This document shows positions 18,087 through 40,982 of a stretch of DNA of 64,000 nucleotides, piece by piece. Position 1 is the first letter of the stretch, and each line of letters starts with the position of its first letter. The position numbers were made by a program, and so were the translations under genes. The notes below the pieces were generated by a model. That model was not told where the DNA came from, searched no databases, and saw only the letters and a program-made list of their open reading frames with translations. The stretch lies in IMG/VR virus record IMGVR_UViG_3300049855_000348, positions 1 to 64,000 of that record. One strand, 5' to 3'.

Positions 18087-18114
18087 TTGCAACTGAAATC
18101 AGTCTTGCTACACC
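18087..18114 (+). promoter_or_regulatory. Candidate promoter of the + tRNA-array leader
   Basis: TTGCAA-N16-TACACC. Shares AGTCTYGCTA with the site upstream of the - leader (40952-40979). Confidence 0.4.
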
Positions 18115-18128
18115 TCCACGTACCAGCC

Positions 18129-18278
18129 ATGAGACCTCTCACCTCCATACCAGCCGTTCGCGCCACCAAGTGGCAAGCGAAGCCCATGACCAAAACGGTC
18201 AATGGCGCACAGGGTTGCTTTGGAGTGACAACTGAACGCAATCAGGCCGATCACATTCCGGAACCAGGGTTCATGTAG
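18129..18278 (+). CDS. Attenuator leader peptide of the + tRNA array (49 aa; alternative start 18186)
   Basis: MRPLTSIPAVRATKWQAKPMTKTVNGAQGCFGVTTERNQADHIPEPGFM. Its 3' end is complementary to the terminator 5' arm. Confidence 0.8.
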   Translation: MRPLTSIPAVRATKWQAKPMTKTVNGAQGCFGVTTERNQADHIPEPGFM

Positions 18279-18307
18279 CAGACAAGGGTAAAACCTCCAA
18301 GCCACAT

Positions 18308-18345
18308 GAACCCCGGGACCAAAAAGTCTCGGGGTTCTTCTTTTT
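18308..18345 (+). terminator. Attenuator terminator before the + tRNA array
   Basis: GAACCCCGGGAC-CAAAAA-GTCTCGGGGTTC-TTCTTTTT. Confidence 0.9.
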
Positions 18346-18490
18346 CTGATCCTCACGGATCTTGACAACTTTATAATCGTGGAAGCCAATGAGGGGAGAA
18401 ATCCCTTCATTCTTGGACCTACCATCCTGTTCTACTAGACAGGGAAGCCTGTGGGGAGAAATCCTCTAGCCGTGGTGGTGGTCCTGGTAT

Positions 18491-18565
18491 CGTCGAGTAT
18501 TTCAGCGGAAGAATATCTGCATGACATGCAGAAGGTCGGTGGTTCGATCCCACCCTCGACGACCA
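18491..18565 (+). tRNA. tRNA-Val(GAC)
   Basis: Cloverleaf, loop ATGACAT, encoded CCA. Confidence 0.9.
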
Positions 18566-18570
18566 AACAA

Positions 18571-18648
18571 TGCGGAGTAACTGGAGATGGAACCAGCCCA
18601 GCCTCATAAGCTGAACAAACGTGTGTTCGAGTCACACCTCCGCAACCA
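18571..18648 (+). tRNA. tRNA-Met(CAT); Met versus Ile2 not resolvable
   Basis: Cloverleaf, loop CTCATAA, CCA. Confidence 0.88.
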
Positions 18649-18649
18649 T

Positions 18650-18839
18650 TTGCAAGGACCTCTCTGCCCACCATCTCGATCCTAAGAAGAAAGAAGACAA
18701 CATCGGTACGATGGTCAGAAGAAGAGTGGCTATCAAAACTTTGGAAATCGAACTGCAAAAGTGTCTCTGCGTGTGTGAGAACTGTCATCGCAAGATCCAT
18801 GCAGGTATCATCAAACCTTTTCTCAGTGCTGGATCATGA
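18650..18839 (+). pseudogene. Truncated HNH endonuclease remnant
   Basis: HHLDP.KK...KC.CVCENCHRKIH begins right after the tRNA CCA with no start context. Confidence 0.65.
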
Positions 18840-18886
18840 CCGAACGCCTGTGGTCATTCCCTGGCGGGCACTCGGATTCTTCACAT

Positions 18887-18963
18887 GGTGGTCGTAGCTC
18901 AATGGATAGAGCACTGGACTGTGGCTCCAGCGGCTGTGGGTTCGACTCCCATCGATCACACCA
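18887..18963 (+). tRNA. tRNA-His(GTG)
   Basis: Cloverleaf, loop CTGTGGC, G-1 present, A73. Confidence 0.92.
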
Positions 18964-18970
18964 GTTCATT

Positions 18971-19047
18971 GTGCGGAGTACGCGCCTGACCCAGGCAAGA
19001 GGGTTTGCTCTAACCTCCCAGAGAAGAACGGGAGGTTGCTTCGGCAT
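18971..19047 (+). ncRNA. Putative structured spacer RNA (three hairpins in a closing stem)
   Basis: GCCTG/CAGGC, AGAG/CTCT, AACCTCCC/GGGAGGTT. Confidence 0.4.
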
Positions 19048-19121
19048 GGCTTGGTCGCTCAACGGCAGGGCGCTGGTTTGAAAAACCAGAGACGAAGGTT
19101 CGACTCCTTCTCAAGCCACCA
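19048..19121 (+). tRNA. tRNA-Phe(GAA)
   Basis: Cloverleaf, loop TTGAAAA. Confidence 0.92.
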
Positions 19122-19133
19122 TCTCCTTCTCAC

Positions 19134-19211
19134 GGTCGGTTCACTGCATGGTGCAGTGTGCGCAAGGACAGTCCCCTAAGCACGGCGGTTCGATTCCCCG
19201 GCTGACCACCA
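19134..19211 (+). ncRNA. tRNA-like RNA with no canonical anticodon loop
   Basis: GGTCGGT/GCTGACC-A-CCA, TTCGATT loop, GC-GCAA-GG..CC-CCTAA-GC in place of the anticodon arm. Confidence 0.7.
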
Positions 19212-19221
19212 TTTTTTTCAT

Positions 19222-19294
19222 CGGCTGGAATAGGTGCGCGTAAGGCATCAGATCCCCTCAAGCGATGGAGGTTCGATTCCTCCCTGGCCGACCA
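19222..19294 (+). ncRNA. tRNA-like RNA lacking a D-arm
   Basis: CGGCTGG/CTGGCCG-A-CCA, perfect GGAGG-TTCGATT-CCTCC, module GC-GTAA-GG..CC-CCTCAA-GC. Confidence 0.7.
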
Positions 19295-19296
19295 AG

Positions 19297-19402
19297 TACG
19301 ACTTCTCGGGTTCCGCAAGGAACGATCGTCCTACTGGCTACAACGGTGAAAATCCGGTGGATGCCAGAGGTGGTGGGATGGCTCACCAAATAAACTGAGA
19401 CT
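19297..19402 (+). ncRNA. Structured RNA A (paralog of RNA B)
   Basis: ACGAC start, CTCGG/CTGAG closing stem, GCAA tetraloop, AATAAA before the closing strand. Confidence 0.55.
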
Positions 19403-19407
19403 CATAA

Positions 19408-19484
19408 GCACCGATCGGCTGGTGGAAAAGCTACCTCCCTTTCAAGGAGATTCTTCGCGGGTTCGACTCCCGTTCGGTGTACCA
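19408..19484 (+). tRNA. tRNA-Glu(TTC)
   Basis: Cloverleaf, loop CTTTCAA. Confidence 0.88.
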
Positions 19485-19590
19485 ACGACGGAGCACAGTG
19501 ATCGAAAGATCGACCGGCTAGGCAACTCGCAAGAGTGCTCGAAAGGGCGGAGTCTAGTGGGGTGTAAGCACCTCGAATAAACTGTGAGTT
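19485..19590 (+). ncRNA. Structured RNA B (paralog of RNA A)
   Basis: ACGAC start, CACAG/CTGTG closing stem, GAAA and GCAA tetraloops, AATAAA. Confidence 0.55.
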
Positions 19591-19592
19591 AT

Positions 19593-19666
19593 GGTCCTTT
19601 CTGTCAGTGGCAGGCAGCCTGATTCTCAGTCAGACAACGTCGGTTCGATTCCGACAAGGACTACCA
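19593..19666 (+). tRNA. tRNA-Glu(CTC)
   Basis: Cloverleaf, loop TTCTCAG. Confidence 0.88.
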
Positions 19667-19669
19667 GCA

Positions 19670-19767
19670 AGAGCGGGACACTGGTTCGAGGCCAGTCATC
19701 GCAAGATGTAGCTCAGGGTGAAAACGTAAGGCATCAAACCCCCAAGTAATCCGGAAGAGCACGCTCT
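19670..19767 (+). ncRNA. Permuted (T-AS-D order) tRNA mimic with inserted module
   Basis: AGAGCG/CGCTCT closing; CTGG-TTCGAGG-CCAG; CATC-GCAA-GATG; TA-GCTC...GAGC. Confidence 0.55.
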
Positions 19768-19771
19768 ATTT

Positions 19772-19849
19772 GTTCCTGAGGACTAACGGCTAGGTCACCT
19801 CCCTGTCACGGAGTCATTCAAGTGGGTTCAACTCCCATCAGGAACGCCA
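19772..19849 (+). tRNA. tRNA-Asp(GTC)
   Basis: Cloverleaf, loop CTGTCAC, G73. Confidence 0.9.
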
Positions 19850-19853
19850 ACAT

Positions 19854-19927
19854 CCACGCTTCGTCTAATGGCAGGGCACCGATCTGATACGTCGGATACC
19901 AAGGTTCGATTCCTTGAGCGTGGACCA
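19854..19927 (+). tRNA. tRNA-Ile(GAT)
   Basis: Cloverleaf, loop CTGATAC. Confidence 0.88.
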
Positions 19928-19941
19928 CTTCAGTTTCACAT

Positions 19942-20016
19942 TGTGGGATGGCCTATGTGGTAGGGCACCCGGTTGTTACCCGGACTATACTGGTTCGACT
20001 CCAGTTCCCACAGCCA
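19942..20016 (+). tRNA. tRNA-Asn(GTT)
   Basis: Cloverleaf, loop TTGTTAC. Confidence 0.92.
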
Positions 20017-20021
20017 CTTTT

Positions 20022-20097
20022 GGGGTCGTAGCTCAATTGGCAGAGCACCTGTTTTGCACGCAGGATGTTAGCGGTTCAAGTCCGCTCGATTCCACCA
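20022..20097 (+). tRNA. tRNA-Ala(TGC)
   Basis: Cloverleaf, G3:U70. Confidence 0.95.
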
Positions 20098-20167
20098 CGC
20101 GGGAGTAATCTGAGAAATCAGAGAGAATTACCAGCCTCACAGCCGGCAAGGAGTAGACTGTGGTTTT

Positions 20168-20243
20168 GGGGAGTTAGCTCATCTGGTAGAGCGCGAGCAT
20201 GGCATGTTCGAGGCGAGGAGTTCAAGTCTCCTACTCTCCACCA
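20168..20243 (+). tRNA. tRNA-Ala(GGC)
   Basis: Cloverleaf, G3:U70. Confidence 0.92.
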
Positions 20244-20256
20244 CTTTCAATCATAC

Positions 20257-20340
20257 GGGCGGCGATATCTCAGAAGCGTAAGGATGATCCCCCAAGTTAT
20301 GAGAAAATCCTATGGGGTGAAAGCCCTCAACTGTCCACCA
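20257..20340 (+). ncRNA. tRNA-like RNA with an Ala-type acceptor (G3:U70, A73, CCA) and a TGAAAGC T-loop
   Basis: GGGCGG/CTGTCC-A-CCA; TGGGG-TGAAAGC-CCTCA; module GC-GTAA-GG..CC-CCCAA-GT. Confidence 0.6.
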
Positions 20341-20342
20341 CT

Positions 20343-20432
20343 CGATCGGAACGTCAGTCGCAGCGTAAGGCTTTTATCAAATCCCCAAGCTGTGCAGTAA
20401 CGCAACTGCTGGTGAAAGACCAGCCTGATCAC
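20343..20432 (+). ncRNA. tRNA-like RNA with a TGAAAGA T-loop and no encoded CCA
   Basis: GATCGG/CTGATC; GCTGG-TGAAAGA-CCAGC; module GCAGC-GTAA-GG..CC-CCAA-GCTGT. Confidence 0.55.
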
Positions 20433-20440
20433 TCTTCAAA

Positions 20441-20523
20441 CGAAACCCTGGCGGTGAAAAACCGCTTCCTCGGCGCATCCCCTACGTTGGTCTACCTCTG
20501 AAGTTTATCGACCCAGGGCTTCG
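20441..20523 (+). ncRNA. Structured RNA with a T-loop-like first hairpin
   Basis: CGAAACCCTGG/CCAGGGCTTCG closing; GCGG-TGAAAAA-CCGC. Confidence 0.45.
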
Positions 20524-20602
20524 TGTTTCTGCTAGCTAGATTCATGGGTACCATCAGCGACATCGACGATCAACTCTACGTTCAGCACATCAAGTAACGC
20601 AT

Positions 20603-20677
20603 ACGTCGATAGCTCCAATGTAGAGCGACGGTTTCCAAAACCGTTGGTTGGGGGTTCAAGTCCCTCTCGACGTGCCA
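20603..20677 (+). tRNA. tRNA-Trp(CCA)
   Basis: Cloverleaf, loop TTCCAAA. Confidence 0.92.
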
Positions 20678-20682
20678 TTCAC

Positions 20683-20757
20683 TGAGAGATAGTTCAACGG
20701 TAGAACGCTGCCCTCTGGAGGCAGATGCTAGAGGTTCGAGTCCTCTTCTCTCAACCA
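20683..20757 (+). tRNA. tRNA-Gln(CTG)
   Basis: Cloverleaf. Confidence 0.95.
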
Positions 20758-20760
20758 CAC

Positions 20761-20835
20761 TCAGGAATAGTTCAACGGTAGAACGCTGACCTTTGGAGTC
20801 AGTTGCTCCAGGTTCGAGTCCTGGTTCCTGAACCA
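20761..20835 (+). tRNA. tRNA-Gln(TTG)
   Basis: Cloverleaf. Confidence 0.95.
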
Positions 20836-20843
20836 TTTCACAT

Positions 20844-20922
20844 CTGCGTGTAGCTCAGCCTGGAACAGAGCACTTGCCTTGGGAGCAAGGGGTCGGAGGT
20901 TCAAATCCTCTCACGTAGACCA
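20844..20922 (+). tRNA. tRNA-Pro(TGG)
   Basis: Cloverleaf, loop CTTGGGA. Confidence 0.92.
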
Positions 20923-20927
20923 TTCAT

Positions 20928-21009
20928 GACGGTCGAGTCGAAAGTCGGGCGCTCCGGCATCAGATTGCAACCCTGATGACAGGTGGTTGAACTCCACCGA
21001 TCGTCTCCA
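20928..21009 (+). tRNA. tRNA-Cys(GCA) with an enlarged D-arm
   Basis: Loop TTGCAAC, U73, D region about 8 nt longer than normal. Confidence 0.8.
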
Positions 21010-21014
21010 TTCAC

Positions 21015-21090
21015 GTGTGTGTATCTCAGTGGCTAGAGAGCTTCCTTGCCAAGGAAGAGGTCGCAGGTTCAAGTCCTGTCACACACTCCA
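21015..21090 (+). tRNA. tRNA-Gly(GCC)
   Basis: Cloverleaf, U73. Confidence 0.95.
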
Positions 21091-21093
21091 ACA

Positions 21094-21160
21094 GGGGCAA
21101 ATGCGGGTTCAACTCCCGCTGCGACTTCGGTCGTATCGTCTAACCCGGTAGGACGGCCCC
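21094..21160 (+). ncRNA. Circularly permuted tRNA fold (YrlA/Y-RNA-like T-AS-D order); structure may extend to about 21280
   Basis: GGGGC-AAAT-GCGGG-TTCAACT-CCCGC-TGCGAC-TTCG-GTCGTA-TC-GTCT-AACCCGGT-AGGAC-G-GCCCC. Confidence 0.75.
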
Positions 21161-21282
21161 ACCCCGTGCGGATTGGATACCCGCACGGAATCCGAAGTCC
21201 TCAGGTTCAAGCCAAGGCAACCGCTCGCCGAGCGGAATACAAAATGCGGCTAGAGCAGGGGAGCACGAACGTGGCCCCGTTT

Positions 21283-21356
21283 GCCGATGTAGGTCAATGG
21301 TAGATCTGCTGCCTTCCAAGCAGAGGACGCGGGTTCGATTCCCGCCATCGGCTCCA
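21283..21356 (+). tRNA. tRNA-Gly(TCC)
   Basis: Cloverleaf, U73. Confidence 0.92.
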
Positions 21357-21360
21357 TCAT

Positions 21361-21436
21361 GTGTGCCTAGCTCAATGGATAGAGCATCTGACTACGGATC
21401 AGAAGGTTGAAGGTTCGAGTCCTTCGGTACACGCCA
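21361..21436 (+). tRNA. tRNA-Arg(ACG)
   Basis: Cloverleaf. Confidence 0.95.
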
Positions 21437-21469
21437 TTGCATAGCGATCTTTTTGGCTAGCATGTAACC

Positions 21470-21997
21470 ATGTCACTCAAAGATGCCCTCTTTCACTTTC
21501 GTGATCTTGGTTACTACGTTGATGATCAAGGAAATGTATTCAACCCAAGAGGAAAGATTCTTCGGTGTTCAACAAACAAAGATGGTTACAAAAGAATTAC
21601 CACAAGAATGAGAAATCATCCAGTTCATGGGGATTGGTGCCCTAAGGTTGAGGTTCACCGTCTTGCCGGTTATCAGAAGTTCGGAGACAAAATCTTCACC
21701 GAAGGACTTGAGATCTGTCACGATGATGGCGATAAGCGAAACAACGCCAAAGACAATCTGCGACTCGATACGCACAAAAGTAATATGATGGATGTTCCTC
21801 AAGAGGTAAGGATCAATAGAGCAAGACGTGCTGGTAGAGAACATGCCAAGCTAACAGATGAGCAGGTTGCTCACATTCGTTCATCTGGCATGACTCTGAA
21901 ACAGATCATGCAAACATACGGTATCAGTAAGTCTGGTGCCTCCTACGTCAGATCAGGAAAGACTTACGCCAGCCCGTGTATCCCCTCGCTTTCCTAA
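21470..21997 (+). mobile_element. HNH homing endonuclease inserted in the tRNA array
   Basis: VHRL...ICHDDGDKRNN..DNL, C-terminal HTH-like segment; AT-richer than its flanks. Confidence 0.85.
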
Positions 21998-22051
21998 AGC
22001 GGTGAAAGGGTAACTGGACACATGCAGGTTCAAATCCTGCCTCGGGTACCA
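21972..22051 (+). tRNA. Non-canonical rewired tRNA-Arg(CCT)-like, 80 nt
   Basis: Acceptor stem, T-arm and CCA; anticodon arm TCGCT-TTCCTAA-AGCGG nested inside CCC/GGG; AACTGG lies 3' of it. Confidence 0.7.
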
Positions 22052-22054
22052 CAT

Positions 22055-22132
22055 CGGGGTCCTAGTACGGGAGTGTCTGCATACCATTCGGTCACTACAG
22101 CCTCGGCGGTTCAATCCCGCCAACCTCGACCA
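22055..22132 (+). ncRNA. tRNA-like RNA lacking a D-arm (G3:U70, A73, CCA)
   Basis: CGGGGT/ACCTCG; GGCGG-TTCAATC-CCGCC; single long bulged arm ending in loop TCTGCATAC. Confidence 0.6.
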
Positions 22133-22135
22133 CAT

Positions 22136-22211
22136 GCGATCGTATTTCAATTGGAAGAACACCACCCTCCGAAGGTGGAAGGTGCAGGTTCGAGTCCTGC
22201 CGATCGCGCCA
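22136..22211 (+). tRNA. tRNA-Arg(CCG)
   Basis: Cloverleaf. Confidence 0.92.
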
Positions 22212-22214
22212 TCT

Positions 22215-22290
22215 GGTGACGTAGCTCAATGGACAGAGCTTCCAGCTTCTACCTGGATGGTTGGAGGTTCGAGTCCTCCCGTCATCGCCA
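22215..22290 (+). tRNA. tRNA-Arg(TCT)
   Basis: Cloverleaf. Confidence 0.95.
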
Positions 22291-22294
22291 TCAT

Positions 22295-22369
22295 GCTGCC
22301 ATAGCCGAGTGGTAAGGCACTTCATTCGTAACGAAGAGACCGGGTGTTCGATTCACCCTGGCAGCACCA
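22295..22369 (+). tRNA. tRNA-Thr(CGT)
   Basis: Cloverleaf. Confidence 0.9.
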
Positions 22370-22373
22370 TCAC

Positions 22374-22449
22374 GCCCCCATAGCTCAGTTGGTAGAGCAA
22401 CAGTTTTGTAAACTGTAGGTCGTCGGTTCGATCCCGACTGGTGGCTCCA
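22374..22449 (+). tRNA. tRNA-Thr(TGT)
   Basis: Cloverleaf. Confidence 0.93.
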
Positions 22450-22456
22450 TTTTCAC

Positions 22457-22530
22457 GCTGCTATAGTTCAGTGGTAAAACACGTCCTTGGTAAGGACGAG
22501 CCCCAGGTTCAATTCCTGGTAGCAGCACCA
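22457..22530 (+). tRNA. tRNA-Thr(GGT)
   Basis: Cloverleaf. Confidence 0.93.
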
Positions 22531-22535
22531 TTCAT

Positions 22536-22611
22536 CCATCAGTAGCGTAATTGGCAGCGCAGCGGGTTTTTACCCCGTGGGTTGTGAGTTCGACTCTCAC
22601 CTGATGGACCA
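22536..22611 (+). tRNA. tRNA-Lys(TTT)
   Basis: Cloverleaf. Confidence 0.92.
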
Positions 22612-22617
22612 TCGCAT

Positions 22618-22693
22618 GCATCCATAGCTCAACTGGCAGAGCACTCGGTTCTTACCCAAGGGGTTGGAGGTTCAAATCCTCCTGGATGCACCA
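22618..22693 (+). tRNA. tRNA-Lys(CTT)
   Basis: Cloverleaf. Confidence 0.92.
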
Positions 22694-22707
22694 TCATTAC
22701 ATAAGTC

Positions 22708-22941
22708 ATGCCAGCATGGAAATGGATGATCCTGAAGTTCTGTACCAGAGCGCATTTCATGCGGCTCATAGCAACCTTGATCATCCTCATCGCAGGCTTT
22801 CAATCTCTCTACTACCAGAAGATTGAAGACACGTGGTTGATCCTGGTTGGTGCAGTGATGAACCACTACTTCAACCACAAAGAAGCTGCGAACGTCACGG
22901 AAGAAGACAAGAATCCGGACGACGAATGCAAGGTCGGTTAG
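22708..22941 (+). CDS. Small two-TM membrane protein embedded in the tRNA array
   Basis: Two hydrophobic segments and an acidic tail; the stop codon lies inside tRNA-Val. Confidence 0.55.
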   Translation: MPAWKWMILKFCTRAHFMRLIATLIILIAGFQSLYYQKIEDTWLILVGAVMNHYFNHKEAANVTEEDKNPDDECKVG

Positions 22942-23006
22942 TTCAGCGGTAGAACGCTTCTCTTACACGGAAGATGTCGGGGGTTCGATCCCCTCACCGA
23001 CTACCA
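22932..23006 (+). tRNA. tRNA-Val(TAC)
   Basis: Cloverleaf. Confidence 0.93.
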
Positions 23007-23011
23007 CTTGC

Positions 23012-23091
23012 CGGTCTGTATCGGCTCGGTCTTATAAGCCGTCGAAACCGTAATTGGTTACATGAGGGTTCGACTCCCTCCAGACCGACCA
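23012..23091 (+). tRNA. Non-canonical rewired tRNA-Ile(TAT)-like, 80 nt
   Basis: Same segment lengths as 21972-22051; loop CTTATAA; CGG/CCG covaries with CCC/GGG. Confidence 0.75.
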
Positions 23092-23126
23092 CAAGGCTTC
23101 CACGATTCCCCTCCAAGGAGAACGCC

Positions 23127-23678
23127 ATGGCACCCGGTGCCTGCATAGTGCTGAACAACTCGTATGCCTTCCTCTCGATCAACAACTGGTTCGAGGCGAT
23201 GCGTCTCGTCGTCCGTGGCCGCGCCGTGCCGCTGGCAAACTACGAGACCAAGATCCGGGCAGAGCGTGAAGAGTTCGACGCACCAGCAGTCGTGATGCTG
23301 AAGCACCACGTGAACCTGGGGCGGAGAAGGCAACCTTTCACCCTGCCATCACATCGCAACATCTGGGTCCGTGATGGTGGGCACTGCGCCTACTGCAATC
23401 ACCCGCTGACGCTGCGGACAGTGACCAAGGAACACGTGATGCCCAGGTCACGCGGTGGAGAAGACAGCCTCTTGAACGTCGTGTCCGCCTGTGGCGACTG
23501 CAACGCCAAGAAGTCGAACCGCACGCCGGCAGAAGCCGGCATGAAGTTCCGTGACGGCATCGAACTGCGTCACCTCAACGATGAGGAGAAGCTGACGGTG
23601 CTGCTCAAGACCTCCCAGAGCCACGAACGGAAGACGTGGCTGGGGTTCCTCAAGAAGCAGGGTCTGACGCTGTTCTGA
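23127..23678 (+). CDS. HNH endonuclease (McrA-like)
   Basis: VLNNSY, RNIWVRDGGHCAYC, T.EHV.PRSRGG, NVV.AC..CN.KK.NRTP; SD AAGGAG. Confidence 0.88.
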   Translation: MAPGACIVLNNSYAFLSINNWFEAMRLVVRGRAVPLANYETKIRAEREEFDAPAVVMLKHHVNLGRRRQPFTLPSHRNIWVRDGGHCAYCNHPLTLRTVTKEHVMPRSRGGEDSLLNVVSACGDCNAKKSNRTPAEAGMKFRDGIELRHLNDEEKLTVLLKTSQSHERKTWLGFLKKQGLTLF

Positions 23679-24647: not shown

Positions 24648-24653
24648 TAAGCC

Positions 24654-26231: not shown

Positions 26232-26527
26232 ACAGACACGGCATCAAAACGACAACGAAGGAGGTTTTCTTTTTCTCCTTCAAGGGTGACTCTACCGTCA
26301 GTTCACTCGATCAGATCACCCTTCCCCCAGCAATGGGACTCAGTGATCAGATGTTTCACCGTTTTGGCGAATGGCTCAAGCGTGAGGGTCATGCCTGGGA
26401 ATACCTTTCAGAGGAACGACTCTGTCAGCTATCGATTGAGTTCTTCAACCTTGCTCTCATGCAGCATGAGAAGCCACGTCGCTTCGATCGGATGGCTACC
26501 AAGGAAGAGATCAAAGTAGGGTGTTGA
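26228..26527 (+). CDS. Hypothetical protein
   Basis: GTGA overlap. Confidence 0.55.
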   Translation: MNRHGIKTTTKEVFFFSFKGDSTVSSLDQITLPPAMGLSDQMFHRFGEWLKREGHAWEYLSEERLCQLSIEFFNLALMQHEKPRRFDRMATKEEIKVGC

Positions 26528-26551
26528 CTTAGACTGAATGGTCGCTATACT
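26524..26551 (+). promoter_or_regulatory. Class I promoter
   Basis: TTGACT-N16-TATACT, ATG 6 nt downstream. Confidence 0.88.
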
Positions 26552-29753: not shown

Positions 29754-30350
29754 ATGCGCTTCTTCCTCCTGCTCCTCCTGTCCTTCTCCACTCTGTTCGC
29801 CGGTGATCCTCCGGCTGCCGAGGCCAAGCTGCCTGCCGATGTGCAGAAGGTAGTCGATGAACGTGATGCTGCGGTGGCCAAGGCCAAGGCGGTCTTCGAT
29901 GCGGCTCAGGCCAAGGCGACGACCGAGGCTATCGCCAAGCTGGAGAAGGTGGTTGTCGCCATCACAAAAAAGGGCGATCTCGCCAACGCTACGGCTATCC
30001 AGAAGTTGGTCGACGAGTACAAGGCCGGGCTTCCGGATCTATTGGGTAAGAAACCAGAAACAAAAATCGATCTTGAGGAGGCGATTGTTGGTGTGAAGTG
30101 GAAATTTTACTGGCAAGGTCTTGGTGGTGAAAACAAGATCATGAGATTTGCCCGTAAGGGTGTCATTAGTGAAGGGTCCAACTTCGGTGAAAACAGTTAT
30201 CGCATCAAGGACGGTGTTCTACAACTTCTCAATCAGAATGGTGGAATACACAGCACTCTCACTCTGAGGGCTGATGGGAATCTTGAAAGTGGAGACACTT
30301 CTGAATCAACCTGGAAGGGGAAGTGCTTCTTGATCAAGGCCGAGAAATAA
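29754..30350 (+). CDS. Secreted or periplasmic protein with a signal peptide
   Basis: MRFFLLLLLSFSTLFA signal, Ala/Lys-rich helices, SD AAGGA. Confidence 0.7.
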   Translation: MRFFLLLLLSFSTLFAGDPPAAEAKLPADVQKVVDERDAAVAKAKAVFDAAQAKATTEAIAKLEKVVVAITKKGDLANATAIQKLVDEYKAGLPDLLGKKPETKIDLEEAIVGVKWKFYWQGLGGENKIMRFARKGVISEGSNFGENSYRIKDGVLQLLNQNGGIHSTLTLRADGNLESGDTSESTWKGKCFLIKAEK

Positions 30351-31146
30351 TCCTGATCAGTTCGTTGTTTTTCACGTCCTGACAGAATGATGGGCGATCA
30401 ATAAGAAGGCTGTCGTTTTCAAATACGTCGATCGACAGCCTTTCAACTTCTGCCCATCTATAGAGAAAATGAAAGTGGTAGGAGTAGATCTCGAAGTCTG
30501 ACTCAACCTGAAGAAGTCGACCATCGATGTAGCGAACGGCTGGATGAATGCCTTTGTGATTCTGAAGAGAGTCGCGGCCAACGTGCTTGGCTCCAACTCG
30601 CTTCATCGCTATGGAAAACCACCGCTCATCAAGACAATGATGTTTTTCAGTATCGCAGATCTTTTGCCGAAAGTCCAGATCTTCTGAAAATTCTTTGAAC
30701 CACTTTTCTTGAGTAGAAGAAAAGTAGTCATTTTTGAACCATGTCCAATATCCTCCGATGCGATCATAATGACTGATTATTTCAACATCGTCAGAGATCA
30801 GATTTTTTACTAGATCGTAGTTTCCGTACATGGCATCCATGTCGGTCCACATAAAACAATCGTAATCTTTGATGATGTCGTTGAAGATCCAATAGAAGAG
30901 CGGTCGAAGATCACAAATTTTATAGGCATGCGGAAGACCCTTGAACTCTGGAATTATCTTTCTTACACGCTCGTTGATGTCCTCCATCGACATCTTTACG
31001 AATTCCATGTTAGGATACATCTTGGGAGGAGGTGTATCAGCAATAACGATGTACTTGTCGATTCCCTGCTTCGCACCTGAACGTCCAGTCAGGTGCCAGA
31101 TCTTAGGGTAAGGTCCCTGCCAAACGTTGAGCATGCAAGAACGCAT
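30334..31146 (-). CDS. Glycosyltransferase-like protein (GT-A, DUF6625-like)
   Basis: YKICDLRP...I...YDCFMWTDMDAMYGN, DE..F motif. Confidence 0.75.
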   Translation of the reverse strand: MRSCMLNVWQGPYPKIWHLTGRSGAKQGIDKYIVIADTPPPKMYPNMEFVKMSMEDINERVRKIIPEFKGLPHAYKICDLRPLFYWIFNDIIKDYDCFMWTDMDAMYGNYDLVKNLISDDVEIISHYDRIGGYWTWFKNDYFSSTQEKWFKEFSEDLDFRQKICDTEKHHCLDERWFSIAMKRVGAKHVGRDSLQNHKGIHPAVRYIDGRLLQVESDFEIYSYHFHFLYRWAEVERLSIDVFENDSLLIDRPSFCQDVKNNELIRIISRP

Positions 31147-31147
31147 C

Positions 31148-34009
31148 TTACCACCATGCCTTGAAGAAGCCGATACCGTCGGCGAAATATCTGAATGTAA
31201 CTGACATACCTTTTTTACGCAGGTAGGTAGAAAGACCTTCTATGGTATAATCAGAGATTGAATGACCACTCATCATACTTGCTGAGTATCGATTGTCTCC
31301 TTCCCTGAAGTTATGAAACTCACCGACAATCTTTTTTATTTTAGAAAGTTTTTTGGTGGTGTAGAGGATAGGGAACTCAGATCCTTCACAGTCAATCTTC
31401 AAAAGATCAACTTCATCTAAGATATCGTCTAGACCAATTACAGGGACACTTATTGTTCCACGCTCATAAATCACGTGTGCTCCTCCAAAGTTGTTTCCAA
31501 CGTTGGTGAGACTTGCTATTGATTTACGATATTCGTCTGATCTTCCTATAGCGGCTGTGATGACTTTGATAGATGGATATTTTTTTACATTTTGTGCAAG
31601 TATGAGGAGGTTGTCTAACATCGGCTCACAACATATCACTTCTTTTGCACCAAGTGAGGCGCACATGGCTGAGAATGCACCAATGTTGCCGCCGATGTCC
31701 AACACTGTTTTTCCGCTCACGTCAGATGGTTGTATCTCATACTCGTTTTCAATGACAACAGAGTGAATGACGCCCTGGTCAGTTGTATTTTCACGATAAA
31801 CGAGTTCGTTGGCGATGTTTTTTGCTTTGGCTTTACTGATAGGAAGTTTTGGAATAACTCTTTTGTGTGAATAGTATTCATCAAGCTGTGTTTGAGCAGT
31901 GATAAACTCAACAACATCGCCATGATAAAAACCAAGACCACCACTCTTCTTTATTTTGAAAAGATACAATGGTGTTCCACAACACATAGCCACATGCGCA
32001 ATACCTGAATCAACGGCAAACACAGCACGAGCCGACGAGATTTCGTCAAACAAGGCTTTCATGTCGGTGCCATGGTCTTTGAATGTTGCTAATGGGAAGG
32101 ATGCCTTCATCCATTCATCATGTGGTTGAAGGAAGACTATGTTATAGCCTTGCTCCGTGAATCGAGCGACCAATTGAACGATGTCGTCTTTAGAGATGTC
32201 GTAGTTGTTCGAGTAAGATCCCGACGAATGACCTACAAGGTGAAAAATGACATTGTTCCTTCCGGAATCACCACAAGAATATCCAAGATAGTCATGTGGA
32301 AAATCCAACGCATCAGCCGAACGGTCTTTATTACCGAATTTCATGACCTTGATGAAATTTGAAATAAAGTTAGAGCACTCGAAACTACTCCAGTGCTCGT
32401 GAACACAGTTGTCACTAGGAACTGGGATCCACCCTGTGAAATCCTCAGGTCCACCGTCAACTGGTCGAATCTTTGTTACAGGAATCTGCTCGATCCATTG
32501 ATCAATGTCTTGGTGTTCTATCCTGGCGATGTCTACAAACTCTCGCATCTTTTGATCAATGAGTTTGCTGTTACCGTAAAAGTAAAGTTTCTGCTTTGTA
32601 TGTTTAGCATACCAATAATACAAAGAGACATGCAATATAGCATCACCAAGACCTGACTTCCAGTTGATGTAAAGGAAGGGTTTTTCTTTCACCGCATTCT
32701 CCTTCCTATCAAACCACCGCTCAACCTTGTGTTCATCGTAGTTGAGCGTCCAGTCCCAGAAGGCTTCCTTGCTGCGGTAGACCCACATAGGAACACGCCA
32801 CCCTGCCGCGATGAAGCAGGGTCCGCTCTGGGGGGTGATCAACAGATCGAGCTTGCTGACCATGTCGACTATCCAGGAGATGTCGCCGTTGACCTGTCGC
32901 AGGTCTTCAACGCCCTCAGGAACGATTCTGTTGTCTCGGTTGCCTATCAGGAAGATCCGATGCTTTGGATAGCTTTGACGGGCTTCCTTGAGCATCTGGT
33001 CTAGGACTACAGGGTCGATATCTCCCTGGGTGTTGCTGTGGGTGATCAAACCGATGAGTCCGCCGTTTGGCCTTGGCTTTGGTCTGTTGAAGTGGATGTC
33101 AAAAGACTTTCCTGGAGTCATGGTCGGATCCATGAAACGGTAAAATCTCTTCACACCGTTCATCTGAGGCCATTCGTCTAAAGAAGGGTTACCACCGCAA
33201 TCGATCATGTCGGGAGTGCGTTCAGACCAGATCACCCCATCAAAAAACTCACAGGCAGCTTTGCGTTCTGGTTGAAACCAGACCAACACCGAGTGACCGG
33301 TTTTTATATGATAGAGATGAGCGGCAGCACAGAAACCTAACACATCACCGAGCATCTGGTGACCCATCCAGAATGATTTTTCGGCTTTCTTGACGTTGTG
33401 TGAATCGATAAGGAAATCGTCGTAGACGACCTTTTTCTTGAATCGAACGACTACCTTTTTTTCAATATCAGAGAAGTCATCAAGCTGGAAGGCATATCCC
33501 TCTACGGTGATTTTGACATTTAGATTACTTGCACGATAGAGATAATCGACACCTTCCTGCTTCAAAATCTCAACATTATATTTGAGAAAATCATAGGTCT
33601 TTTTTGGATCATTTACGGCATAAAATTGTGTGCCCCATGGAGCACCACTTTTGATGGTGAATAAGCCTTTTGTATCGAGAGGTAGTGTTGTTTCACTGTG
33701 AAAAAACAAAAGGTCGTAATCGTCACCTTCGTTCATGATACCATCAATATCAGACATGAGTCCACGACGAAAGAGAGCATCATCTTCACAGATGAAGATC
33801 TTCTTATGTCCAGCTTTTATCGCCATTTCTAGGACTTTGATATGACCGAGAGTACAAGCCAGTCGACGATTCTCGTTCACGACTCCGTCTACCACAACGT
33901 AGGTCGTGTTCATCTCTTCCATTTGCTTAGCAAAAATGGCACGTCGATCACTACGGCTGGGGAGACTCAGGACGTAGACCTGATCAACGTAATCATTCAA
34001 CGATGTCAT
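31148..34009 (-). CDS. Multidomain enzyme: GT25-like, two GT9-like domains and a FkbM-like methyltransferase
   Basis: YVLSL..RSDRR..CTLGH..I.EDDA; DLLITPQSGPCFIAA; AVFAVDSG.AHVA...GTP; VLDIGGNIG..LKIDCEGSE. Confidence 0.8.
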   Translation of the reverse strand: MTSLNDYVDQVYVLSLPSRSDRRAIFAKQMEEMNTTYVVVDGVVNENRRLACTLGHIKVLEMAIKAGHKKIFICEDDALFRRGLMSDIDGIMNEGDDYDLLFFHSETTLPLDTKGLFTIKSGAPWGTQFYAVNDPKKTYDFLKYNVEILKQEGVDYLYRASNLNVKITVEGYAFQLDDFSDIEKKVVVRFKKKVVYDDFLIDSHNVKKAEKSFWMGHQMLGDVLGFCAAAHLYHIKTGHSVLVWFQPERKAACEFFDGVIWSERTPDMIDCGGNPSLDEWPQMNGVKRFYRFMDPTMTPGKSFDIHFNRPKPRPNGGLIGLITHSNTQGDIDPVVLDQMLKEARQSYPKHRIFLIGNRDNRIVPEGVEDLRQVNGDISWIVDMVSKLDLLITPQSGPCFIAAGWRVPMWVYRSKEAFWDWTLNYDEHKVERWFDRKENAVKEKPFLYINWKSGLGDAILHVSLYYWYAKHTKQKLYFYGNSKLIDQKMREFVDIARIEHQDIDQWIEQIPVTKIRPVDGGPEDFTGWIPVPSDNCVHEHWSSFECSNFISNFIKVMKFGNKDRSADALDFPHDYLGYSCGDSGRNNVIFHLVGHSSGSYSNNYDISKDDIVQLVARFTEQGYNIVFLQPHDEWMKASFPLATFKDHGTDMKALFDEISSARAVFAVDSGIAHVAMCCGTPLYLFKIKKSGGLGFYHGDVVEFITAQTQLDEYYSHKRVIPKLPISKAKAKNIANELVYRENTTDQGVIHSVVIENEYEIQPSDVSGKTVLDIGGNIGAFSAMCASLGAKEVICCEPMLDNLLILAQNVKKYPSIKVITAAIGRSDEYRKSIASLTNVGNNFGGAHVIYERGTISVPVIGLDDILDEVDLLKIDCEGSEFPILYTTKKLSKIKKIVGEFHNFREGDNRYSASMMSGHSISDYTIEGLSTYLRKKGMSVTFRYFADGIGFFKAWW

Positions 34010-35238: not shown

Positions 35239-35265
35239 GACGAATCTACCCAGGGGAAAGGTGAA

Positions 35266-36732: not shown

Positions 36733-36738
36733 GCCGGA

Positions 36739-36766
36739 AGTATAGCGACCTTTTGGTAGCTGTCAA
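36739..36766 (-). promoter_or_regulatory. Class I promoter
   Basis: TTGACA-N16-TATACT, ATG 6 nt downstream. Confidence 0.85.
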
Positions 36767-37077: not shown

Positions 37078-37084
37078 GGCTTAG

Positions 37085-37411
37085 TTAGGCTTCGCCGTTG
37101 TTGGTGTCTTTCCATTTATTCCAATCCAATCCCATCATCACCTTTGTGGGATCGGTGTCTCTACCAGTGTGATAGGTATCACCTTCATCTTCTTCCATCG
37201 GTTGTGAGAGTAGACGATTGATGCCGTTGAATTTATCCCATAGAAATTCGTTTTGTTTACGAAGATCGGCTATGTCTGAATTTTTATATTCAGATTCTCT
37301 TTCAAGCTCTATGATACGTTGGCGTAGCCGTTCATTCTCCTCAATCAGCTTCTGAAGCTCTGGAGGAATCACGCCATCACCATCAAACACCTGCACTTCA
37401 GACAAGCCCAT
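37085..37411 (-). CDS. Hypothetical coiled-coil protein
   Basis: 108 aa. Confidence 0.55.
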   Translation of the reverse strand: MGLSEVQVFDGDGVIPPELQKLIEENERLRQRIIELERESEYKNSDIADLRKQNEFLWDKFNGINRLLSQPMEEDEGDTYHTGRDTDPTKVMMGLDWNKWKDTNNGEA

Positions 37412-39211: not shown

Positions 39212-39217
39212 GCCCAT

Positions 39218-39245
39218 ATATTAGCGATCTTTTGGTCTAAGTCAA
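39218..39245 (-). promoter_or_regulatory. Class I promoter
   Basis: TTGACT-N16-TAATAT. Confidence 0.88.
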
Positions 39246-39253
39246 CACCTATC

Positions 39254-39841
39254 CTAGAACTTCCATCCAATCCCGAAGCTCACGTCCGACAGGTAGACGG
39301 AAAGCATGCCTAGAAACGGCCCGTTTTCCAACTCGGCCACCACCCCAACGTGGTCGCTGCGGCTGACGATGCTGTTCATGCAGTCAGAAAGCTGATCCCC
39401 ATACCAGTAGCGGTACCGGAGGATGAGGGAGCCACCGAAGGTCGGATCTCGCAAGGCTGGACCACCGAAGATCCAACCACCCTCAGCCCAGGATCTGGAC
39501 TCAAGGTCGAACCAGGGGTGATCGTAGTCAATGCCGATGAAAGGACGAACGGTCGTGTGCTCCTCTTCCCGAAGATTATACCTTTGGCTGCCGAAGGTGT
39601 CGTGAACGCTGTTCTGGATCTGCTTGCCATTGAGATCGCCGGAAAGCAACACACCAGCCCTGATGAATTCGTAGCGAACCGAAGTTGCCAGGATGTCTAC
39701 CCGGGAGTCGCCGTAGATGCGATCGGTGTAGAGTCGTCCGTCGATGGTCAGTTCTGTGGTCGCTTGTCGGAGTGTGAGAACAAGACCACCGGTCATGTAA
39801 TCATCACCACCGTCGTTGAGAAGGAGCAGTAGGAAATCCAT
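39254..39841 (-). CDS. Possible outer-membrane beta-barrel-like protein
   Basis: Alternating beta-strand pattern, terminal aromatic residues (..GIGWKF). Confidence 0.45.
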   Translation of the reverse strand: MDFLLLLLNDGGDDYMTGGLVLTLRQATTELTIDGRLYTDRIYGDSRVDILATSVRYEFIRAGVLLSGDLNGKQIQNSVHDTFGSQRYNLREEEHTTVRPFIGIDYDHPWFDLESRSWAEGGWIFGGPALRDPTFGGSLILRYRYWYGDQLSDCMNSIVSRSDHVGVVAELENGPFLGMLSVYLSDVSFGIGWKF

Positions 39842-39847
39842 CTTTCA

Positions 39848-39875
39848 AATATAGCGACTTTTTTATCTAAGTCAA
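39848..39875 (-). promoter_or_regulatory. Class I promoter
   Basis: TTGACT-N16-TATATT, ATG 6 nt downstream. Confidence 0.82.
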
Positions 39876-39878
39876 GAA

Positions 39879-39967
39879 TGGCGGAAGTGGCACGAATCGA
39901 ACGTGCAAGACCCGTGAAGGTCTGTTGAGGTTCAAGCTCAGTCCCCTCGCCTATAGGGAGCACTTCC
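39879..39967 (-). tRNA. tRNA-Ser(TGA)
   Basis: Long variable arm, G73, CCA. Confidence 0.9.
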
Positions 39968-39972
39968 ATGAA

Positions 39973-40064
39973 TGGCGGATACGGCAGGATTTGAACCTGC
40001 GGGTGACTTGCGCCACCTCCTAGTTTCGAGCTAGGTGCGATAAGCCGGGCTCTGCCACGTATCC
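39973..40064 (-). tRNA. tRNA-Ser(CGA)
   Basis: Long variable arm, G73. Confidence 0.92.
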
Positions 40065-40069
40065 ATGAA

Positions 40070-40162
40070 TGGCGGATTGCTAGGGAGTCGGACCCTCAAC
40101 GTGTTTCCACGTTTCATCGCTTTCCAGGCGAGTACGGTTAGCCACCACCGTCAACACAATCC
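40070..40162 (-). tRNA. tRNA-Ser(GGA)
   Basis: Long variable arm, G73. Confidence 0.88.
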
Positions 40163-40167
40163 ATGAA

Positions 40168-40259
40168 TGGCGGAACGGGTGAGATTTGAACTCACGGGTG
40201 ACTTTCGCCACCTCTTCCTTAGCAAGGAAGTGCAATAGGCCAGACTCTGCCACCGTTCC
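40168..40259 (-). tRNA. tRNA-Ser(GCT)
   Basis: Long variable arm, G73. Confidence 0.93.
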
Positions 40260-40263
40260 ATGA

Positions 40264-40347
40264 TGGTCTCTGAGGTGGGACTCGAACCCACAAAGCTGCG
40301 ATGTTTAGGACCGCAAGGTGTGCCATTCCCTATGAAGCCACTCAGAG
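40264..40347 (-). tRNA. Atypical tRNA-Leu(TAA)-like
   Basis: GCGGT-CCTAAAC-ATCGC (C33), expanded D region, short variable loop. Confidence 0.65.
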
Positions 40348-40351
40348 AAGT

Positions 40352-40429
40352 TGGTGTCCCATGCAGGAGTCGAACCTGCAAAGATCTGCATTTTGAATGC
40401 AGCGCGTCTGCCAATTGCGCCAATGGGAC
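40352..40429 (-). tRNA. tRNA-Leu(CAA), short variable loop
   Basis: Cloverleaf, A73. Confidence 0.9.
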
Positions 40430-40430
40430 G

Positions 40431-40507
40431 TGGTATCCACGAAGAGATTTGAACTCTTACTGTTCGGTGCCTAAGACCGATGCCTCTGCCGGTTGGGCTA
40501 CGTGGAC
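40431..40507 (-). tRNA. tRNA-Leu(TAG), short variable loop
   Basis: Cloverleaf, A73. Confidence 0.9.
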
Positions 40508-40513
40508 GTGAAA

Positions 40514-40599
40514 TGGTGGGATAGGCTGGAGTCGAACCAACAGTGGCGGTGAAGCGTCACGTTTACAGCGTGGTGAGCCTTCCAATGCTCAACTATCCC
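40514..40599 (-). tRNA. tRNA-Tyr(GTA)
   Basis: Long variable arm, loop CTGTAAA. Confidence 0.9.
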
Positions 40600-40609
40600 A
40601 GATGAAAAA

Positions 40610-40688
40610 TGGTACCCGTGACAGGAGTCGAACCTGCAATTTTACTACCACCTCAAGGTAGCGCGTCTGCCAATTTCGCCACACGGGC
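40610..40688 (-). tRNA. tRNA-Leu(GAG), short variable loop
   Basis: Cloverleaf, A73. Confidence 0.9.
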
Positions 40689-40691
40689 ATG

Positions 40692-40769
40692 TGGTACCGG
40701 GGGCGGGAGTCGAACCCGCAAAGAACATGGACCTGAACCATGCGCGTCTGCCTGTTTCGCCACCCCGGC
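40692..40769 (-). tRNA. tRNA-Leu(CAG), short variable loop
   Basis: Cloverleaf, A73. Confidence 0.9.
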
Positions 40770-40800
40770 GTGTATGAAGCGACCACGATCAGAAAGTTGT

Positions 40801-40835
40801 AAAAGAAAGAACCCCGGCTTTTTGGGCCGGGGTTC
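40801..40835 (-). terminator. Attenuator terminator before the Ser/Leu/Tyr tRNA array
   Basis: GAACCCCGGC-CCAAAAA-GCCGGGGTTC-TTTCTTTT. Confidence 0.9.
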
Positions 40836-40860
40836 GAGAGTTCGCTTTGGGCTTTTGTGC

Positions 40861-40941
40861 CTACTCCAGCGTGCTCCGAATCCCGGTCTCCGAATAGGAG
40901 AGGGACAACGACAGCAGACTGAGTGAGAGAGAACGGCGCAT
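40861..40941 (-). CDS. Attenuator leader peptide (26 aa) of the Ser/Leu/Tyr tRNA array
   Basis: MRRSLSLSLLSLSLSYSETGIRSTLE, SD GAGGAG; too short to appear in the ORF track. Confidence 0.88.
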   Translation of the reverse strand: MRRSLSLSLLSLSLSYSETGIRSTLE

Positions 40942-40982
40942 TGCGCTGCTCCTCATAGCGAGACTACTCCAGGTGGCAAGAA

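Follow-up and report, generated by a model that had tools for sequence, protein, structure and literature searches.

Putative leader-peptide attenuators upstream of two tRNA gene arrays in an uncultivated phage

Background

Leader-peptide transcription attenuators of amino-acid operons (trp, his, leu, pheA, and the multivalent thr and ilvGMEDA leaders) typically contain a short leader ORF enriched in regulatory codons, followed by an antiterminator (segments 2:3) that competes with an intrinsic terminator (segments 3:4). A ribosome at the stop codon masks segment 2, and the thr and ilv leaders sense more than one amino acid (modelling in PMC1183508). In the pheST operon of E. coli, the same kind of control is applied to an aminoacyl-tRNA synthetase, so that poor decoding of the cognate codons raises its expression. 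T-box riboswitches sense the state of the tRNA pool and act by antitermination ahead of translation-related genes, while in mycobacteria leaderless Cys-rich short ORFs make downstream expression respond to one amino acid (bioRxiv 10.1101/834739).

We examined positions 1 to 64,000 (hereafter "the window") of IMG/VR record IMGVR_UViG_3300049855_000348, from an uncultivated 220-kb phage. A preliminary description had proposed that the tRNA genes of this phage are sorted by amino acid into two arrays, each preceded by a leader-peptide attenuator. Our analysis supports this interpretation, although it rests on computation only. In the literature searched, we found no earlier description of such control of tRNA genes.

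Organization of the tRNA arrays and their leaders

ARAGORN at default settings identified 25 tRNAs on the + strand (18491-23006) and eight on the - strand (39879-40769). Relaxed runs and Rfam added Asp-GTC at 19772-19849, Ser-GGA at 40070-40162, and a Leu-UAA at 40264-40347, which ARAGORN miscalled and which was read by eye. An atypical tRNA-Cys(GCA) at 20932-21009 was found only at a low threshold, but it lies where Cys lies in the relative L152 (described below). The totals are 27 species for 17 amino acids on the + strand and Ser x4, Leu x5 and Tyr x1 on the - strand, in agreement with the preliminary description. The latter are exactly the bacterial class II (long variable arm) tRNAs.

Each array is preceded by a weak promoter, a short ORF, an antiterminator-capable segment at the end of the ORF, and a near-identical intrinsic terminator. 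The + strand features are:

18087-18114 (+), predicted promoter of the + leader, with -35 TTGCAA, a 16-nt spacer ending GTCTTGC, and -10 TACACC
18129-18278 (+), pan-amino-acid leader ORF of 49 codons plus TAG, with 37 distinct codons
18263-18277 (+), antiterminator 5' strand (segment 2), covering the last codons of the leader ORF, including GGGTTCATG just before the stop
18303-18317 (+), antiterminator 3' strand (segment 3), overlapping the 5' arm of the terminator
18308-18347 (+), intrinsic terminator with a 12-bp stem (GAACCCCGGGAC / GTCTCGGGGTTC; hairpin at 18308-18337; -21.6 kcal/mol) followed by a T tract
18491-23006 (+), class I tRNA array, with an HNH ORF (21470-21997) and several tRNA-like elements in the spacers

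The - strand features are:

40952-40979 (-), predicted promoter of the - leader, with -35 TTGCCA, a 16-nt spacer ending GTCTCGC, and -10 TATGAG
40861-40941 (-), Ser/Leu/Tyr leader ORF of 26 codons, MRRSLSLSLLSLSLSYSETGIRSTLE, with the Ser/Leu/Tyr (S/L/Y) run at 40932-40891 and an alternative in-frame ATG at 40956
40897-40924 (-), segment 1, inside the S/L/Y run
40873-40887 (-), antiterminator 5' strand (ACCGGGATTCGGAGC), codons 19-23 of the leader
40826-40841 (-), antiterminator 3' strand, overlapping the 5' arm of the terminator
40801-40835 (-), intrinsic terminator with a 10-bp stem (GAACCCCGGC / GCCGGGGTTC; hairpin at 40835-40809; -19.5 kcal/mol) followed by a T tract
39879-40769 (-), class II tRNA array: Leu CAG, GAG, UAG, CAA, UAA; Tyr GUA; Ser GCU, GGA, CGA, UGA

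The shared promoter motif noted in the preliminary description was confirmed, as GTTCTTGC-N10-AGTCTYGCTA occurs with no mismatch only at these two places. The + leader promoter is a weak variant of the phage's own promoter consensus (TTGACTTAGAC..GGTCGCTATACT, with 14 copies in the window), and both leader promoters are poor matches to it (-10 TACACC and TATGAG). Similar promoters are found in a related phage (L152/L071): L152 has the same layout at the + leader (TTGCTA-N16-TATAAG, then 14 nt to the ATG), and L071 has TTGACA-N17-TATGAT at the corresponding place upstream of the - leader. Within the window, no promoter of the phage's consensus type lies between either terminator and its array, so the tRNAs can presumably be made only by read-through. 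Only about 30 nt separate the - terminator from its first tRNA.

The observed arrangement could also be caused by ordinary terminators that end the upstream operons, with chance small ORFs and with tRNAs made by leaky read-through or from promoters that were not recognized. Both terminators lie downstream of protein genes on the same strand (17605-17859 and 40983-41564), and in bacterial genomes the same hairpin sequence is a common terminator after tRNA genes. We consider this improbable, given that each leader has its own conserved promoter between the upstream gene and the ORF, that the composition of the leaders and its recurrence in two further groups are far from chance, and that the complementarity to the terminator arm is conserved.

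Translation signals of the leaders are ambiguous. The + leader has no Shine-Dalgarno sequence. In the - leader a good AGGAG lies 7 nt before the ATG, but it is inside the predicted -10 region and would be missing from a transcript started at that promoter. However, about half of the phage's genes lack a Shine-Dalgarno sequence, and the phage routinely places its ATG 6-7 nt after the -10 element, so a very short 5' leader is not unusual for it.

Given these weak start signals, the ORFs could be untranslated or incidental, with the terminators overridden by a phage or host factor that binds the conserved leader RNA. Both window leaders carry a similar motif between stop codon and terminator (GGGTAAAACCTCCAAGCC / GGCACAAAAGCCCAAAGCG), which resembles a motif repeated in the array spacers, and a second lineage (described below) keeps an invariant hairpin in the same place. 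This alternative appears unlikely, since indels in the ORFs of both lineages are in frame while noncoding parts carry 1-2-nt indels, the S/L/Y signal exists in one reading frame only, and the antiterminator strand always abuts the stop codon.

Codon content of the leader ORFs

The - leader contains 14 consecutive S/L/Y codons, and 16 of its 26 codons are S/L/Y. All six Ser codons, three Leu codons and one Tyr codon are used, and all 10 tRNA species of the array are sampled, which places the leader in the top 0.13% of windows. The 14-codon run is unique in six frames; the next longest is 7, apart from a tandem repeat at 1-168. The + leader holds all 17 other amino acids, each represented one to six times, and samples 25 of the 27 species of its array (top 0.4% of 49-codon windows). 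Thirty-residue windows with at least 16 non-S/L/Y amino acids and no S/L/Y occur only at the + leader (8 of 56,943, all overlapping it). The preliminary description had stated that each leader excludes the codons of the other array. This is only approximately true, as the + leader contains one Leu (CTC) and one Ser (TCC) codon and ten codons of the - leader are not S/L/Y.

Alternative RNA structures

In both leaders the 5' arm of the terminator can pair with the last codons of the ORF (duplexes of -20.2 kcal/mol, z -2.8, for the + leader and -18.9 kcal/mol, z -1.9, for the - leader). In truncated-transcript folds of six leaders from three groups, this arm is paired upstream with P 0.73-1.0 when the ribosome is absent or stalled early, and P falls to 0.01-0.59 with a ribosome at the stop codon. 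The complementary segment always lies 0-24 nt before the stop, with z of -1.9 to -5.0 in six of seven leaders. At equilibrium, however, the full transcript always prefers the terminator, so the model depends on kinetics that could not be computed here. In the minimum-energy fold of the - leader, segment 1 pairs with segment 2 when no ribosome is present (40924-40897 with 40891-40863), forming an anti-antiterminator that a ribosome stalled in the S/L/Y run would break. Such a pairing is not evident in the + leader.

In the pan-type leaders, the fold without a ribosome already gives the antiterminator, so any loss of coupling opens the gate. With each amino acid represented so few times, the switch could report only whether any ribosome follows the polymerase closely (overall ribosome availability, host shut-off or the stage of infection), the diverse codon content being secondary. 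Although possible, we regard such a general sensor as unlikely. It does not explain why the second leader is 14 straight S/L/Y codons ahead of exactly the S/L/Y tRNAs, in two genomes with different codon order, nor why leaders reach 19-20 different amino acids in 26-27 codons.

Conservation in other phages

The related phage L152/L071 keeps both leaders. Its S/L/Y leader has the same composition as that of the window but a different order (LSSLLSSYLSSY against SLSLSLLSLSLSYS) and lies ahead of a Leu/Ser-only array. The L152 homologue of the + leader differs by in-frame indels of 3 and 24 nt and carries one Leu and three Ser. Only two genomes of the twin-leader type were found.

An unrelated, low-GC phage lineage has the same three-segment architecture ahead of mixed tRNA arrays. 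We found at least 14 peptide variants of 26-28 codons with 14-20 distinct amino acids, one of which has all 20 in 26 residues. Windows with 19 or more distinct residues are 34 of 139,901, and half of those are the leaders themselves. Indels inside the ORF are multiples of three. Of 27 pattern hits outside the original contig, 12 lie 110-530 nt upstream of same-strand arrays of up to 26 tRNAs. In this lineage a good sigma-70-type promoter lies between the terminator and the array, and there the attenuator cannot be the only gate.

The computational tests proposed in the preliminary description came out in favor of attenuation, although covariation support is weak. The antiterminator base differs between genomes yet stays complementary (ATG:CAT, TC.GGG:CCC.GA, TA:TA, TG:CA). 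Within the second lineage, however, the helices are almost invariant, and the 1-2 pairs that change on both sides are not above controls. One variant (L067) has a weak antiterminator (z -0.7), and another (L413 type) compensates in the terminator but not in the antiterminator.

The peptide sequence itself is fairly conserved within the second lineage (MK.HYCP..NQ...RP[SA]WA..G). Together with the separate promoter after its terminator, this could indicate that the short ORFs encode functional micropeptides and that the terminator simply ends a tiny gene. We find this very doubtful. The S/L/Y leaders keep composition and not order, the two pan-type groups share no peptide similarity yet both maximize amino-acid diversity, no homologue was found in the protein database or in GenBank phages, and the position immediately ahead of tRNA arrays is conserved.

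Proposed mechanism and significance

We think it probable, though by no means certain, that each tRNA array is a transcription unit gated by a ribosome-mediated attenuator. In this model, a weak phage promoter starts a transcript that opens with the short ORF, after which RNA polymerase meets the terminator. If the ribosome translates the ORF without delay and reaches the stop codon, it covers the segment complementary to the terminator's 5' arm, the terminator folds, and the tRNA genes are not transcribed. If the ribosome lags at any earlier codon because the matching charged tRNA is scarce, the antiterminator forms first and the array is transcribed. Each array would then be switched on by a shortage of what it supplies and switched off once supply is restored, a negative feedback on decoding capacity. 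Translation of the ORFs, the kinetic coupling and the physiological trigger are inferred. Classical attenuators use runs of regulatory codons, and single codons should give a low-gain sensor. With only one or a few codons per amino acid, the + sensor should respond best to severe loss of a tRNA species, for example by cleavage by a host nuclease or host tRNA decay during infection, and less to mild starvation.

A broader possibility, which we consider about as likely as not, is that phages with large tRNA sets carry "decoding-capacity homeostats", leader ORFs that sample nearly every tRNA species the phage encodes and release transcription of the array whenever any one species fails. The phage tRNA set would then be an inducible countermeasure to host tRNA cleavage or decay and not a constitutive codon-usage aid, and in this phage the circuit would be split into two independent channels that follow the class I / class II tRNA divide. 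The debate over why phages carry tRNA genes (codon-usage matching, or replacement of tRNAs lost to host defenses or host shut-off) has lacked a regulatory clue. An attenuator whose sensor is made of the codons served by the array would show that tRNA genes can be under leader-peptide control, that a single leader can monitor many amino acids at once, and that phage tRNA arrays are feedback-regulated according to decoding failure. It would also give synthetic biology a compact sensor for shortage of any tRNA.

Comparison with known systems

T-boxes bind uncharged tRNA directly and need no ORF. No T-box or other Rfam leader family matches either phage leader (at E <= 1), and the leaders are too short for the specifier loop, T-box sequence and stem I architecture. 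The mycobacterial short ORFs lie at or near the 5' end of the transcript without a Shine-Dalgarno sequence, as the phage leaders may do, but they occur in different organisms, have different targets and respond to a single amino acid.

The phage leaders share with the amino-acid operon attenuators a short ORF containing regulatory codons, an antiterminator that competes with the terminator, and a segment 2 that a ribosome at the stop codon would mask, and in the minimum-energy fold the - leader also has a 1:2 pairing. The genes regulated by classical leader-peptide attenuators encode amino-acid biosynthesis enzymes or aminoacyl-tRNA synthetases, while the genes downstream of the phage leaders are tRNAs only, apart from the one HNH ORF, and the element is encoded by a phage. 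One sensor covers three amino acids that share a tRNA class. The other covers 17 to 20 amino acids with mostly single codons instead of runs, and this pan type has no clear 1:2 anti-antiterminator. As in pheST, a component of the decoding machinery appears to be placed under leader-peptide attenuation. The pheST leader senses one amino acid (Phe) and controls protein genes, whereas in the mechanism proposed here the output is the tRNA itself, which closes the feedback loop directly.

Gene content of the window

The window, which is part of the 220-kb IMG/VR contig UViG_3300049855_000348, carries phage-type genes for a DnaE-type polymerase, a helicase, a MazG-like pyrophosphohydrolase and HNH endonucleases, and it has no close relative among GenBank phages. 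The MazG-like nucleotide pyrophosphohydrolase gene (17028-17612) lies just upstream of the + leader. This protein and the protein encoded at 40983-41564 were used as anchors, but their homologues in 13 other viral contigs have no adjacent tRNA arrays. Two HNH endonuclease ORFs are associated with the + array, one inside it (21470-21997) and one just after it (23127-23678). Relatives of the HNH ORF that do have arrays (loci L155 and L156) have no upstream terminator. A low-GC island at 30000-34000 (43-46%, against about 56% elsewhere) holds a 953-residue protein with glycosyltransferase and FkbM methyltransferase domains and is likely acquired DNA.

tRNA genes

At default settings, ARAGORN finds 25 tRNAs on the + strand (18491-23006) and 8 on the - strand (39879-40769). 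Rfam and a relaxed ARAGORN run add Asp-GTC at 19772-19849, and the relaxed run adds Ser-GGA at 40070-40162. The gene at 40264-40347, which was miscalled by ARAGORN, has the anticodon loop CCUAAAC and is Leu-UAA. An atypical tRNA-Cys(GCA) at 20932-21009 appears only at a low threshold, although it sits after Pro-UGG, exactly where the relative L152 (a locus of contig UViG_3300044712_001292) has a normal Cys. The + array therefore serves 17 amino acids with 27 anticodons, and the - array holds Ser x4, Leu x5 and Tyr x1. Ser, Leu and Tyr are in general the three bacterial class II tRNAs, with long variable arms, and the split is therefore also one of class I against class II.

Extra tRNA-like elements with a T arm, acceptor stem and CCA end but with aberrant or expanded bodies occur at 17857-18009, 19130-19211, 19220-19294, 21972-22056, 22057-22132 and 23010-23091. 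One of them lies upstream of the + leader promoter. Rfam gives these elements only weak tRNA, tRNA-Sec or YrlA-like scores. A repeated spacer motif, GTGAAA..GCGYAAGG..A(A/T)CCCCNAAG, with GAAA-type hairpins, is found at 17874-17900, 19718-19744, 20270-20300 and 20360-20400. A similar stretch sits between stop codon and terminator in both leaders (18280-18305 and, on the - strand, 40860-40840). The motif could be a processing or protein-binding site.

Leader regions

Each array is preceded by the same set of parts:

18083-18110 (+), promoter motif of the + leader
18129-18278 (+), + leader ORF, encoding MRPLTSIPAVRATKWQAKPMTKTVNGAQGCFGVTTERNQADHIPEPGFM
18308-18337 (+), terminator of the + leader, stem of -21.6 kcal/mol, followed by a T tract
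40956-40983 (-), promoter motif of the - leader
40941-40861 (-), - leader ORF, encoding MRRSLSLSLLSLSLSYSETGIRSTLE
40835-40809 (-), terminator of the - leader, stem of -19.5 kcal/mol, followed by a T tract

The promoter motif, GTTCTTGC-N10-AGTCTYGCTA, occurs without mismatch only at these two places. It is a degenerate copy of the phage's own highly conserved promoter consensus, TTGACTTAGAC-N6/7-GGTCGCTATACT, which occurs 14 times in the window (for example at 7651-7678, 14135-14162, 26524-26551 and, on the - strand, 39875-39848). In most copies an ATG or GTG follows within 9 nt of the -10 element, usually 6-7 nt, which implies widespread leaderless or near-leaderless mRNAs. No such promoter lies between either terminator and its array, and only about 30 nt separate the - terminator from the first tRNA. 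The tRNAs therefore have to be made by read-through.

The start signals of the two window leaders are uncertain. About half of the long ORFs in the window lack a Shine-Dalgarno sequence, and a recurrent junction motif, GCTAGATAAGCC, lies directly before start codons upstream of many genes (for example 1503-3110 on the - strand, 8626, 9817, 50174 and 54181). This motif contains stop codons in two frames and could be a termination-reinitiation signal or a non-Shine-Dalgarno start signal.

The + leader contains all 17 non-S/L/Y amino acids, plus one Leu and one Ser, using 37 distinct codons. We found 30-residue windows with at least 16 non-S/L/Y amino acids and no S/L/Y only at the + leader. The 14-codon S/L/Y run of the - leader is the longest in all six frames, the next longest being 7, apart from a tandem repeat of about 15 nt at 1-168 (TCAAGCTCAAGCTCG), which reads as poly-Ser in one frame. 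With standard wobble, the + leader samples 25 of the 27 + array species, which puts it in the top 0.4% of 49-codon windows, and the - leader samples all 10 - array species, the top 0.13%. We considered whether the S/L/Y run could be a by-product of a pyrimidine-rich pairing strand, but rejected this idea because the signal is frame-specific and because L071, the second locus of the related contig, achieves it with a different nucleotide sequence.

Predicted alternative structures

Equilibrium folding of the full-length transcript with a masked ribosome footprint always prefers the terminator (P > 0.99). This is expected for a kinetic switch and cannot discriminate between the alternatives. We therefore folded the transcript only up to the terminator loop. 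In these folds the terminator's 5' arm pairs with the last codons of the ORF, GGGTTCATG with CATGAACCC in the + leader and ACCGGGATTCGGAG with CTCTCGAACCCCGG in the - leader. The pairing forms when no ribosome is present or when one is stalled early, and does not form when a ribosome covers the stop codon. The - leader also has a 1:2 pairing between the S/L/Y run and segment 2 (the 5' strand of the antiterminator), as in the trp leader. In seven leaders the complementary strand lies 0-24 nt before the stop, and in six of them the duplex is stronger than in shuffles, with z from -1.9 to -5.0.

A related contig with both leaders

Contig UViG_3300044712_001292 (loci L071 and L152) has the same class I array order. 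Its + leader, MRLIPTVKATTWPTAQRMQPQGCFVRTGSEAKNDHIPASGFSG, differs from that of the window by in-frame indels of 3 and 24 nt, and the promoter spacing is the same. Its antiterminator has a different base that is still complementary (GGGGTTCTC.GGG with CCC.GAGAACCCC). After an HNH ORF homologous to window 23127-23678 comes a second leader, made up of a promoter, GTG-NTGLSSLLSSYLSSYRNTGDGGAL and a terminator, and only Leu and Ser tRNAs follow. The S/L/Y composition is kept but the order is not, a pattern that fits a codon sensor better than a functional peptide. In the window, the class II block has been inverted and moved 17 kb away, together with its leader. Patterns specific to the window-type leaders found only the window's contig and L071/L152. 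Only two genomes of the twin-leader type were found.

A second lineage

The pattern GGGTTC..GAACCCCG..CGGGGTTC found 28 viral loci. Twelve of the 27 outside this contig have same-strand arrays, with 5 to 26 tRNAs inside the fetched stretch, starting 110-530 nt downstream. Eleven of these belong to a low-GC group, which was widened to 14 peptide variants by a pattern for the peptide region. Their leaders are 26-28 codons long, as in MKSHYCPITNNQFEGRPAWADARGSML and MKQHYCPITNNQFEGRPSWADLRGAV, the second of which has all 20 amino acids in 26 residues. Windows with 19 or more distinct residues number 34 of 139,901, and half of them are these leaders. Indels inside the ORF are multiples of three. 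The arrays behind these leaders are mixed and include Ser, Leu and Tyr, which matches the mixed leaders. Nine viral loci (L035, L131-L134, L142, L143, L147 and L149) match the three-segment pattern with a fixed length of 83-85 nt but have no tRNA downstream, and they may be a separate conserved element.

Within the second lineage the helices are 94-97% paired but almost invariant, so covariation is not above controls. A cross-group DNA alignment misaligned segment 2 and was not used for pair counts. The low-GC lineage also has a good sigma-70-type promoter (TTGACT-17-TATATT) between the attenuator terminator and the tRNA array, at 3991-3963 (-) in locus L063 and at the equivalent sites in loci L092, L127 and L067 of the same lineage. 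The attenuator there can only modulate one of two inputs. This promoter is followed, ahead of the first tRNA, by a conserved region of about 250-450 nt of unknown function.

A further search returned mostly bacterial Tyr-Gly-Thr tRNA operons and only two second-lineage loci already known by sequence. In Actinomycetota and Chloroflexota genomes the hairpin GAACCCCG..CGGGGTTCTT commonly follows a tRNA gene. A genome scan gave 120 hits, in 102 of which the upstream GGGTTC is a tRNA T arm followed by a terminator, and none has a downstream array.

Comparison with known systems

No Rfam leader or T-box family matches either leader. GenBank phages gave no DNA or peptide match, the protein database gave no homologue of the 49-residue peptide, and there was no match ahead of arrays in bacterial genomes. 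No attenuator ahead of tRNA genes was found in the full-text literature searched, which was incomplete.

The preliminary description, in which the tRNA genes were sorted into a + array for 17 amino acids and a - array for Ser, Leu and Tyr only, each behind a leader ORF and an intrinsic terminator, is confirmed. Its interpretation of these leaders as attenuators is the best-supported explanation, in which we have moderate confidence, although nothing here shows translation or regulation directly. We regard the arrangement as a form of leader-peptide attenuation not described in the literature searched, in which the mechanism is classical, but the regulated genes (tRNAs), the many-amino-acid sensor, and the twin class I / class II arrangement are not.
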